DNA of 64,000 nt, taken from sequence record NC_010821.1. One strand, 5' to 3'. The notes under the pieces are model-generated. The model saw nothing but the letters and a program-made list of their open reading frames with translations, made no database searches and was not told the origin of the DNA. A program made the translations under genes and the position numbers. Each line of letters starts with the position of its first letter. Position 1 is the stretch's first letter. Below, piece by piece: positions 762 through 43,991 of the stretch.

Positions 762-1298
762 ATGGTCGATACACAACGAGCTGATGCGGTATTGGAAACG
801 GTTAAAACAAGCCTTAGAGCTGGCGAGCGGTTTTTGCTTTACCTTGCGTTTGTTAACGGTAAAACAAAACCACCCAAATATCACAACGGTCATATGAGAT
901 CGCTGGCTCAGCGTGGACTTATTGAACTACTTCCCACCGGTGAATACAAACTGACTTTGGCGGGCGTAGACACATACACCCAGATTTATCTGAACGACGT
1001 AAAGATTGGCGCACGGGATGAAGTTACGACAATCAACTACTTCCGCTGTCACTTCAGTGAAAGATTGCGCGAGGGTTTCGAGGGACCAGTGATCGTATGC
1101 AGTAATGAGGGTGTAATCAATTACACCAAAATGCTCCAGATCACAGAACACCTGAGTCTTAGTCCACGTACGGTTGAATGTGACTACGCCGTGCTGGATT
1201 TCATTGACGAATACACGGGTGAGTCACATGATCTTTATCCGGGTGACACCGTGGTAATGAACAGTGACGGTTACGTAATCCACAAGTTCTCGGAGTGA
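762..1298 (+). CDS. hypothetical protein, possible N-terminal winged-helix
   Basis: 178-aa ORF 3 nt after the previous stop; LAQRGLIELLPTGEYKLTLAG resembles a wHTH wing. Confidence 0.7.
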   Translation: MVDTQRADAVLETVKTSLRAGERFLLYLAFVNGKTKPPKYHNGHMRSLAQRGLIELLPTGEYKLTLAGVDTYTQIYLNDVKIGARDEVTTINYFRCHFSERLREGFEGPVIVCSNEGVINYTKMLQITEHLSLSPRTVECDYAVLDFIDEYTGESHDLYPGDTVVMNSDGYVIHKFSE

Positions 1299-11580: not shown

Positions 11581-11916
11581 CGTGATATTCAGTATGAGTC
11601 GTTAATTCATACCCGCGCCATTACGCGCAGCTGCATGTCGCCATGCAGACTAGACTATATCTTCATCTCAGTGAGATGCTCCCCATTTCCACCCACTTGG
11701 GTGTACACCGTGATAAGCGGTTAGTCGTTGAACGTTCCTTACATTTCTGTAAGGCTTCGCTGCTGATTGTCTCAGAGAGATATCCCAGCAATTAAAGGAG
11801 ATTCCATCTAGGTATCGCTACCTAGTGGGACTGTATCTATTAAATCTTTGTATTGGATAAACCAAGTTGTCGACCACACTCAATGTAGCGTAGACTTTAC
11901 AAACATTCAATACACA
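11581..11916 (-). mobile_element. group I self-splicing intron (336 nt, no endonuclease ORF)
   Basis: Minus strand: P AAUUGCUGGG (11793-11784), Q AAUCAGCAG (11768-11760), R UCAACGACUA (11731-11722), S AAGAUAUAGUCU (11663-11652); exon ends in U, intron ends in G; splicing restores HDD|MKR in frame. Confidence 0.9.
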
Positions 11917-42523: not shown

Positions 42524-42946
42524 ATGGATAAGTCTAAAATCATTGAAACCGTTAAAGCATTCTGTGCTAAACAAGAATTCCCAATTGAGCGATTGGTATT
42601 GGGTTTTGAAACAGCAGCTGTGATGCATGGTCTGCAACGTGGTACTGGTGTTATCCACGCTGAAGTTGATGACCGTGACTTCGAATGGGTTTGGTGCATG
42701 ACTGACAGCCCACCAGGTCGTGGTCTGATGGGTCAGAACATCACCGTTGATGGTGTAACATTCCACGTCGGCATAGCTGGTCATAATGCCAGCCTGATCG
42801 ATGGCGTGATGGTAGTGAGTAAGACACGGTTGTGGGAACAATGTACACTACCGCACATCCAACGTGACTGTGTTCCAGCAATGATTAAGATGTACCAGTC
42901 GATCGCATATGAGTTGATCAAACCTGGTTATCCTGAAGCAGAATAA
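42524..42946 (+). CDS. hypothetical protein, degenerate nucleotidyltransferase-like fold
   Basis: AAGGAG RBS; LVLGFETAAVMHGLQRGTGVIHAEV resembles the G.AA.V.HG.R.T.DID motif without the Asp pair. Confidence 0.55.
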   Translation: MDKSKIIETVKAFCAKQEFPIERLVLGFETAAVMHGLQRGTGVIHAEVDDRDFEWVWCMTDSPPGRGLMGQNITVDGVTFHVGIAGHNASLIDGVMVVSKTRLWEQCTLPHIQRDCVPAMIKMYQSIAYELIKPGYPEAE

Positions 42947-42947
42947 A

Positions 42948-42990
42948 AGCTAGCTCCCTTCGGGGAGCAGCTTTCTTATTTTCTTTTTTG
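42948..42990 (+). terminator. intrinsic terminator, UUCG loop
   Basis: gctccc-ttcg-gggagc with extended stem and a T-rich tract. Confidence 0.75.
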
Positions 42991-43020
42991 TTAAATTATA
43001 CTTGGTGCATGATATTATAG

Positions 43021-43197
43021 TCATGAAGGCAGTCCGTGCAAAAACGCACTGCATACGAGGGGGTGATCCAGCCATAGGTGACCTGGTACGATAAAGCATC
43101 GGCGAGAGCTAACGCGAGTACCTAACTACGAGCCTTGTGACTATCGTTGGCACTATTCTAACCGACGGGTATCGAGCCAGCCTTCGGGTTGGCTTTA
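43021..43197 (+). ncRNA. candidate structured non-coding RNA
   Basis: ORF-free, GC-richer island between an AT-rich promoter-like site (gatattatag, 43011-43020) and a UUCG terminator (43175-43197); closing stem tcatgaaggc/gccttgtga plus several nested stems. Confidence 0.55.
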
Positions 43198-43265
43198 TGC
43201 CGTTAAACAATACTGAGGTAGACATAATCTGTAGGTAATGTTGCCTACTTAACCGAGTAAATAAC

Positions 43266-43991
43266 ATGACTAATGTTGCTACAATTAATAGTCTGATCAA
43301 GACTACAATACAAGCAGTGTTTGACGCAGCGCCAGAACCAGTGTTTAATCCAAGTAGTGTCGAGTATCTGATGGATCGACGAACCACTGGCTTCACCGTA
43401 CCTAAAGATCTCGTTGATTACACACTGTTTAAAGAAGAACTAGTAAACCCCAGTATCAAGGCAATCGTGGTTGTACCTAACCTAGACGACTGGGCTACCA
43501 TTCGAGATACCTTCACCCACGGCCTTGGTCAAGATCCTAAGTTCCGTGTTTATGATACAGAAGGTCAAGTCATCGATGCTTACAACTTCGGTAGTAAGTC
43601 TCACCTCAAATTAGCTAAGTTGTTGAAGATCGATCCAGAGCTTAAAGAGATCGTAAAAACTTCACACATTACTTTTGTAGCTAACGGTGAAGAACGTGAG
43701 GTACCGAGAGGCTTTGTGTTTGAATACCACGCCGAGCGGAATGGGTTCATCATCAAACAAGTGTTGGCTAGGTATCTTGGTCAGGTTAGGATGGTAAATG
43801 AAATCGTCTCTAACATTAATAACGATACACCTGCAATAGCAACCTTGAAAAAGGATGATCCACGTGAGCCACTTGATTTGGTAGTGGTCTATAATTCACG
43901 TAAGTTCTTTGATAAGGTACGTATCAATAAGTTTTACACGTGGTTGTCTACTCAGGCCCATGGTAAGACAAAGATCGTTTTTATCAACTGA
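43266..43991 (+). CDS. hypothetical protein
   Basis: 241-aa ORF. Confidence 0.75.
   Translation: MTNVATINSLIKTTIQAVFDAAPEPVFNPSSVEYLMDRRTTGFTVPKDLVDYTLFKEELVNPSIKAIVVVPNLDDWATIRDTFTHGLGQDPKFRVYDTEGQVIDAYNFGSKSHLKLAKLLKIDPELKEIVKTSHITFVANGEEREVPRGFVFEYHAERNGFIIKQVLARYLGQVRMVNEIVSNINNDTPAIATLKKDDPREPLDLVVVYNSRKFFDKVRINKFYTWLSTQAHGKTKIVFIN

Follow-up and report, generated by a model that had tools for sequence, protein, structure and literature searches.

The stretch at positions 43011-43197 of the window analyzed here, 64,000 nucleotides (nt) of sequence record NC_010821.1 which BLAST assigned to Pseudomonas phage 201phi2-1 (genus Serwervirus; genome position minus 186000 gives window position), is a real, conserved and folded non-coding RNA gene of the phiKZ-like giant phages. 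Between two of its hairpins the RNA carries a nearly invariant motif, G-AGGGGGUGAUCCAGCC, that is complementary to the 3' end of 16S ribosomal RNA (rRNA). Taken together, our results suggest a trans-acting RNA which would dock on the 30S ribosomal subunit through a "super Shine-Dalgarno" with no open reading frame (ORF) behind it; we put the probability of this reading at about 0.5, both the binding and an effect on translation being proposed from sequence comparison. The original prediction, made from the letters of the window, had described a stand-alone structured non-coding RNA with its own promoter and terminator, and this is borne out by the relatives, with promoter-like sequence upstream, a terminator of its own and a fold that covaries in 23 family members. 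What it overlooked was the key feature, the 17-nt invariant stretch complementary to the 16S 3' end, which points to the ribosome as the probable target.

The flagged stretch lies inside the 319-nt gap between gp304 (end at 42946) and gp305 (start at 43266), with a terminator-like hairpin at 42953-42968 upstream in the same gap, and the RNA gene itself extends over 43020-43197 (~175 nt). BLAST comparison of the gap DNA gave 92% identity to Viktualia, 74% to PhiPA3 and 72% to PS119XW-type phages, the matching DNA being intergenic in each. The proteins flanking the RNA in related contigs are 35-55% identical, and the adjacent SNF2 helicase is 51-66% identical. With 72-92% identity at the DNA level against 35-55% for the neighboring proteins, the RNA is thus conserved where little else is.

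A scan of IMG/VR with the 15-mer core of the motif returned mostly chance matches in GC-rich coding DNA, together with the same architecture in many contigs of 170-325 kb. Members were sorted into group A (phiKZ/201phi2-1/PhiPA3-like), group B and group C, the last of which contains the isolate pPa_SNUABM_DT01 (DT01). The phiKZ-like giant phages have a multisubunit RNA polymerase of their own, and group B is phiKZ-like in a broad sense because a fragment of the multisubunit RNA polymerase beta is encoded there. A covariance model (R1) built solely from five distant uncultured group C sequences recovered all group B and group A members end to end, the window element included, with one weak false match in 80 loci. 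A second model (R2) scored the window element at 63.7 bits (43025-43137) and further matched the phiKZ gp203/gp204 gap (50 bits), DT01, Psa21 beside its helicase and two more uncultured lineages. In the sequence records the phiKZ locus is ~212845-213045 (plus strand) and that of PhiPA3 ~216205-216400. The Psa21 member was located by a helicase-anchored search in other genera, which, within 20 kb on either side of the helicase, found no member in phage EL, Erwinia phage RAY or Xanthomonas phage RTH11. The 23 members found include phiKZ, PhiPA3, PS119XW, Psa21, Viktualia, DT01 and uncultured giant phages. Relatives of Burkholderia phage FLC9 (group D) have the 15-mer and a hairpin in common with the family; scoring ~18 bits, and lacking the closing helix (P1) as well as the terminator, they were not counted as members.

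Comparative evidence is decisive for an RNA structure beyond chance, which fold energy alone is not: the minimum-energy fold of the flagged stretch reproduces the closing helix and several hairpins at an energy that is only mildly unusual (z = -1.98). The structure that RNAalifold derived from a plain MAFFT alignment was poor, since the variable arms were misaligned there, and it was replaced by a hand-defined group C structure and by covariance-model alignments. Helices P1, P2, P3 and P3b, set by eye on the five group C sequences, were 91% paired versus at most 44% when slid. Throughout the R1-based alignment 87.7% of cells were paired (31-37% when slid), with changes on both sides in 18 of the 23 pairs. 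When covariation in related phages was analyzed, as the original prediction had proposed, the 23-member alignment had 88.6% of cells paired versus 31-36% with partners slid, double changes occurred in 19 of 23 pairs, and the covariation score was 0.658 versus 0.216 after shuffling, a value reached by none of 500 shuffles.

Most of the helices named at the outset are recovered in this structure. The multibranch domain closed by 43021-43030 and 43132-43140 is present and is supported by covariation in relatives, the core pairs of P1 being 98% paired in the 23 members with compensatory changes at three of five pairs. The same holds for the gtgc/gcac hairpin (P2, whose length and loop differ between groups), for ggtac/gtacc and for ggc-GAGA-gct, whose loop occurs among members as GAGA, GGGA, GCGA or GUGA and is always of GNRA type. 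The further hairpin before the terminator (P5) is supported as well, its stem being preserved via differing sequences in Viktualia, L079, PhiPA3, PS119XW and phiKZ, and the UUCG terminator hairpin followed by UUU shows compensatory changes in relatives. Two proposed helices were lost in the comparison: neither ccag/ctgg nor cgat/atcg is conserved in relatives, and ccag lies inside the invariant single-stranded motif.

The element has no conserved ORF or start codon, in agreement with the initial view that no sense ORF is present; the ORFs overlapping the flagged stretch are short and unconserved. Member lengths differ by non-multiples of three, stop-free spans stay below 30 codons, and no conserved AUG, GUG or UUG follows the motif in the members, UAG standing directly after it in group C and in L279. 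Small "hypothetical protein" genes are annotated over the RNA in Viktualia (CDS0006; L002, 3083-3172) and DT01 (PA10_00263; L205, 5034-5156), one antisense, and are probably artefacts of automatic gene calling.

An Rfam search, also suggested with the original prediction, returned no family for the element at gathering or at permissive thresholds. Rfam 15 at the gathering threshold reported only a group I intron for the whole window, located elsewhere; the flagged region searched at E<=10 gave only chance matches on the neighboring terminator (12-19 bits versus thresholds of 45-75), and five other members searched at E<=0.1 gave no match. ARAGORN found no tRNA or transfer-messenger RNA (tmRNA) in the window, and in 22 related loci no such gene overlaps the element, so that the early statement that the RNA is no tRNA stands. 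The proposed functions fared less well. A conserved structured phage RNA could be a decoy for immune proteins, mimic an antitoxin or be a ribozyme that cleaves itself; against these options, no Rfam ribozyme or antitoxin family matches, the neighbors vary and include no conserved toxin-like gene, and the conserved single-stranded motif points to the ribosome, and we regard this class of explanation as very improbable. The intron itself (RF00028, group I catalytic intron, 11631-11851 on the minus strand, 87.4 bits, a full-length model match) is probably the known 201phi2-1 intron, as the transcriptome paper on this phage has a section on an intron (PMC11512511).

The longest invariant run in the alignment of BLAST-found relatives is 17 nt (AGGGGGTGATCCAGCCA). 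The motif is complementary to the 17 nt that precede the terminal A of Pseudomonas 16S rRNA, a stretch in which the base of helix 45 adjoins the anti-Shine-Dalgarno tail; in Pseudomonas sp. B22129 the match occupies 394-410 of the locus, and the Rfam small-subunit (SSU) model ends at 411, one base further. The reverse complement of the invariant block, with one position left free, was scanned against one genome per species and matches the 16S 3' end across bacterial phyla; among the matches listed, T fills the free position in 118 of 121, with helix-45 context on the 5' side. The 201phi2-1 duplex comprises 15 Watson-Crick and two G.U pairs (16 and one in members with A at the 5' flank) and has a predicted energy of about -35 kcal/mol, and the 23 members are predicted to form 17-20 base pairs (bp) at -33 to -38 kcal/mol.

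Across the 16 core columns of the motif the 23 members are invariant except at three positions. A central G-run column (G in 20, A in three) faces U and forms G.U or A-U, the second column from the 3' end (C in 21, U in phiKZ and Psa21) faces G and forms C-G or U.G, and the last column is C in 22 members and A in one, at an end that frays. The internal variants found in relatives all keep the 16S pairing. Outside the core, the 5' flanking column, opposite U, is A or G in 22 of 23 members, and many members have an extra U opposite the terminal A of 16S. A semi-conserved UAG begins 0-1 nt beyond the motif and might lengthen the pairing into 16S helix 45.

Two rival explanations concern the motif. 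In the first, the match to 16S is incidental, and the RNA either is an ordinary base-pairing small RNA (sRNA), with mRNAs of the phage or the host as targets, or plays a part that is structural only. The search for other targets covered 64 kb of phage genome and no host transcriptome, which leaves room for such partners, and phage sRNAs without known function are common (PMC11512511, PMC8545117). However, none of 200,000 shuffles of the core reaches the contiguous run of 17 Watson-Crick or G.U pairs, there is no second good complement or target of the motif within the 64-kb window, and the matched site is, of all places on the ribosome, the one which evolved for pairing with RNA; an incidental match is quite unlikely. 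As the next best 113-nt tile on either strand of the window reaches a run of only 13, the motif is by far the strongest "Shine-Dalgarno" of the window, and it fronts no gene.

In the second, the motif mimics a ribosome-binding site in order to titrate a protein, for example a repressor of translation, a regulator of the RsmA/CsrA type or a nuclease with Shine-Dalgarno sequences as its cutting sites, and does not pair with 16S. Decoy RNAs of such logic exist (CsrB, RsmY and RsmZ), and the elaborate conserved fold beyond the motif could hold a protein. Conservation, on the other hand, covers 16-18 nt in the exact register of the 16S end, far more than in any GGA or GGAG site that a protein is known to recognize; each RNA carries a single site of this kind, and its variants are pairing-neutral transitions only. 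Titration of a protein is unlikely in our view, if slightly less so than an incidental match.

Several observations fit the docking reading: the same 16-mer serves as a ribosome-binding site elsewhere, the UGAUCCAGYC half of the motif is predicted to be partly open (40-68% unpaired), no start codon follows, and a folded arm stands in its place. Relative to a Shine-Dalgarno site, the complementarity to the 16S tail is there, and the start codon ~5-13 nt downstream that would open a conserved ORF is absent. The RNA would be exported from the phage nucleus and would then dock on free 30S subunits through the motif, where it would occupy the anti-Shine-Dalgarno site or tether the subunit. Such a complex would be unable to initiate, since no start codon or ORF follows the motif and the folded arm found there instead could not thread into the mRNA channel. 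Initiation led by Shine-Dalgarno pairing might thereby be blocked, ribosomes might be held near the phage nucleus, or the 16S tail might be covered against nucleases, and host ribosomes would be re-programmed as to which mRNAs they start on during middle or late infection. In its full form, namely that nucleus-forming phages make a dedicated non-coding RNA that pairs with the anti-Shine-Dalgarno tail, invades the foot of helix 45 and re-programs, tethers or shields the 30S subunit in trans, we hold the proposal at slightly less than even odds.

Several points weigh against docking on the 30S subunit. Folding predictions place part of the motif's G-run in pairs inside the RNA itself (unpaired probability 0.05-0.5), and full pairing needs local unfolding because the last 4 nt (AGCC) pair with bases of the helix 45 foot in the mature 30S subunit; helix 45 may be remodeled by the RNA, or the bases of these last four pairs may be conserved for another reason. 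A global sponge would hit the mRNAs of the phage too, as phage genes also use Shine-Dalgarno sites, and the published phiKZ non-coding RNAs from gradient profiling by sequencing (Grad-seq) map to other loci (PMC8545117). The invariance of the motif is partly a matter of ascertainment, because most of the distant members were fetched by the motif. This effect is limited by the BLAST-found set, which is equally invariant, and by phiKZ and Psa21, which were found at the syntenic site; moreover, every member retrieved with a motif-free probe from another conserved stretch carries the motif, and none was retrieved with a different one. The Pseudomonas-type motif would also pair, through G.U, with the E. 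coli 16S tail, which differs by one base; scans for motif variants fitting the E. coli tail found no family member, and no member from an enteric phage was found.

Related motifs were observed in other contexts. The 16-mer AGGAGGTGATCCAGCC, which complements the 16S tail perfectly, stands directly before the ATG of a conserved ORF of 430-515 amino acids (aa) in other phage contigs of IMG/VR (L223, L234, L247, L248, L268, L283, L286 and L301), where its sequence makes it a natural Shine-Dalgarno site of unusual length that extends into the helix 45 foot. A distinct conserved element, "...cccctattacaAGGAGGTGATCCAGCC(a/g)..acactttggg...", carries the same 16-mer in small IMG/VR contigs (L226, L227, L229, L238, L239 and ~15 similar loci), is crossed by no long ORF in any frame, and may represent a second, unrelated non-coding family. 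In the FLC9-related contigs, L019 (8503-8705; also L047, L052, L056 and L064) has a covarying hairpin, then the 15-mer GGGGGTGATCCAGCC, then another hairpin. The gap that holds them has no terminator and lies ~115 nt ahead of a gene of ~520 aa; the ribosome-pairing module may here be used in cis.

Whether the family RNA could itself act in cis was judged from its genomic neighborhood. It abuts the 5' end of the virion helicase gene in phiKZ, Psa21, PS119XW, PhiPA3 and four contigs (L076, L279, L081 and L042) and is not beside the helicase in DT01 and L048; with respect to the helicase gene it is divergent in phiKZ (L204) and PS119XW (L004) and tandem in PhiPA3 (L003). A cis leader or standby element would be the 5' part of a longer transcript, pre-loading a 30S subunit for the next gene upon read-through of the terminator. 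Consistent with this, a co-directional ORF begins 25-95 nt after the terminator in many members (gp305, phiKZ gp204, the PhiPA3 helicase, L040, L043, L077 and L055), the group D 15-mer lies in a gap resembling a 5' untranslated region (5' UTR), without terminator and ~115 nt before a start codon, and the 201phi2-1 transcriptome study attributes eight sRNAs to premature termination in 5' UTRs (PMC11512511). However, the downstream genes (gp305, phiKZ gp204 and the PhiPA3 helicase) are non-homologous between genomes, the orientation to the conserved neighbor flips, no co-directional gene follows the RNA in L016, L018 and L021 (in L016 it lies between two opposite-strand ORFs), and a strong GC-rich terminator is kept in all A, B and C members. 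Chimalliviruses transcribe inside a ribosome-free nucleus (PMC13282480), which makes ribosome-coupled attenuation unlikely. The family thus combines its own terminator with a conserved covarying structure, as stand-alone sRNA genes do, and does not, as a cis leader would, stand at a constant place in the 5' UTR of genes that are orthologous between genomes; judged by these arrangements the RNA behaves as a stand-alone unit, and a cis leader, although it deserves a small share of our confidence, is an unlikely account.

Two side observations concern these neighbors. The SNF2 helicase matches in two pieces in PhiPA3 (216447-219605) and PS119XW (208783-211929), ~3.1 kb each, and in SL2 (74235-77162, ~2.9 kb), and measures 2.1 kb in 201phi2-1 and phiKZ, which suggests that the gene in the former three holds an insertion of ~1 kb, an intein or an intron. 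In the group C contig L055, the strand that carries the RNA also has genes for tRNA-Trp and tRNA-Asp (60-136 and 872-948, minus strand), a few hundred nt further downstream; no tRNA genes were seen downstream of the RNA in the other members.

Candidate signals for transcription of the RNA abut the 5' end of P1. In group A, WTAC-N14-TATAG occurs with the same spacing upstream of the RNA in 201phi2-1, Viktualia, PhiPA3, PS119XW and phiKZ, and in groups B and C TATG stands directly 5' of P1; both are putative promoters. Neither TGATATTATAGTCA nor TAC-N14-TATAG recurs above chance within the window, so that this is not a general promoter motif of the window. The core of the phiKZ late promoter is T(-3)ATG(+1) (PMC7598289), the same TATG that groups B and C carry, and differential RNA sequencing (dRNA-seq) of early phiKZ infection confirmed no phage sRNA (PMC8244752); the suggestion that the RNA is transcribed early is therefore unsupported. 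At the other end, every member of groups A, B and C has a GC-rich terminator hairpin with U-tract in the corresponding position, and its stem shows compensatory changes; a simple terminator scan had missed it in the window because its T-run is short. The conserved tail that follows the hairpin, mostly UUUAUGCC, is also seen, for example, in the phiKZ locus (L204, ~11723-11730, minus strand), and in most members includes TATG, which reads as AUG too. As a general terminator signature UUUAUGCC was rejected, not being a general feature of the window.

Table 1. Features of the RNA gene and its flanks (window positions).
Feature	Position	Strand	Remarks
Promoter-like TAC-N14-TATAG	42999-43020	+	Putative transcription start ~43019-43023, from sequence
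P1, 5' strand	43021-43030	+	Core GAAGGC 43025-43030; 201phi2-1-specific extension 43021-43024; partner 43132-43140
P2 hairpin (CAG..GUGC-loop-GCAC..CUG)	43030-43052	+	95% paired; double changes in 3 of 4 modeled pairs
Invariant motif G-AGGGGGUGAUCCAGCC	43057-43073	+	Between P2 and P3; complement of 16S rRNA 3' end
Joiner after motif	43074-43084	+	Starts with AUAG, ends in pyrimidine-rich tract; sequence varies by group
P3 stem	43085-43089 with 43118-43122	+	Changes on both sides in 6 of 6 pairs; encloses P3b
P3b	43096-43103 with 43108-43115	+	Changes on both sides in 7 of 8 pairs
P3b cap, GNRA tetraloop GAGA	43104-43107	+	G-N-G/R-A in all members
J3/1 joiner UAACUACGA	43123-43131	+	Contains conserved ACG; ACG(G) kept in all groups
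P1, 3' strand	43132-43140	+	Core GCCUUG 43132-43137 plus extension
P5 hairpin	43145-43167	+	Group A (phiKZ/201phi2-1/PhiPA3-type) only; read directly from sequences
Intrinsic terminator GCCAGCC-UUCG-GGUUGGC, then UUUA	43176-43197	+	Hairpin 43176-43193, U-tract
Conserved UUUAUGCC tail	43194-43201	+	YUUAUNCC after terminator hairpin in nearly all members

Transcripts of these phages have been cataloged before. Poppeliers et al. report 11 sRNAs in 201phi2-1, three of them intergenic (PMC11512511), and the present locus may already be among its unnamed intergenic sRNAs. Those described there include sRNA005, upstream of gp277/gp182 (PMC11512511), and non-coding RNAs of phiKZ are known from Grad-seq (PMC8545117). 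These resemble our RNA in that they are short, come from the same phages and are bounded by terminators, with conservation between genera for some of them. They differ from it in lying at other loci and having other sequences, and none was reported as complementary to rRNA. The named PhiPA3 peaks from enhanced crosslinking and immunoprecipitation (eCLIP) are likewise at loci other than that of the RNA. A literature search, with supplementary transcript-coordinate tables outside its scope, found no description of this RNA or of any phage sRNA that pairs with rRNA.

The RNA would add a new family to annotate, in place of the spurious small "hypothetical proteins" that pipelines now set over it, and even if the link to the ribosome fails it is among the best-supported conserved structured RNAs of phiKZ-like phages, present in the models phiKZ, PhiPA3 and 201phi2-1. 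Phages are known to take over translation with proteins, and to our knowledge an RNA that pairs with the mRNA-docking tail of the ribosome is undescribed in bacteria or phages. The mechanism may well be new as a category. If the reading is true, the RNA would be a natural and very strong 30S-binding module; should the 30S subunit be bound, it would offer a handle on how nucleus-forming phages bias host ribosomes to their own messages late in infection.

Among known systems, the closest is Shine-Dalgarno pairing, with which the RNA has in common the partner (the 16S 3' tail), the register and the identical 16-mer found before ATG in other phage contigs. Usual Shine-Dalgarno sites form 4-9 bp, whereas the phage RNA is predicted to form 17-20 bp, has no start codon or ORF and places its motif inside a conserved, multi-helix, terminated RNA. 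In logic it would resemble 6S RNA, which acts on RNA polymerase, and CsrB, RsmY and RsmZ, which act on CsrA/RsmA: in each a stable structured non-coding RNA mimics a natural ligand, here the ribosome-binding site of an mRNA, and the phage RNA, if the reading holds, would be for the ribosome the counterpart of what 6S RNA is for RNA polymerase. It differs from these RNAs in having no homology to them in sequence or structure (Rfam negative) and in its presumed target, which is rRNA reached by pairing and not a protein. We know of no bacterial or phage RNA that decoys rRNA by base pairing, and the literature search likewise returned none. The cap-independent translation element of the barley yellow dwarf virus (BYDV) type is a structured viral RNA with a short tract complementary to the 3' region of the small-subunit rRNA; the parallel is conceptual only, as that element acts in cis on viral mRNA in eukaryotes and has no homology to the phage RNA. 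The same piece of the ribosome is the subject of protein-based control, and intervention there by phages is already known: the anti-Shine-Dalgarno tail is occluded by bS21, bS18 and bS6 in the ribosomes of Bacteroidetes (PMC7797042), phages encode a bS21 of their own (PMC9723584), and MazF toxins cut the tail off (PMC12274833). All of these change which mRNAs are translated and do so as proteins, whereas the RNA described here would do so by pairing.

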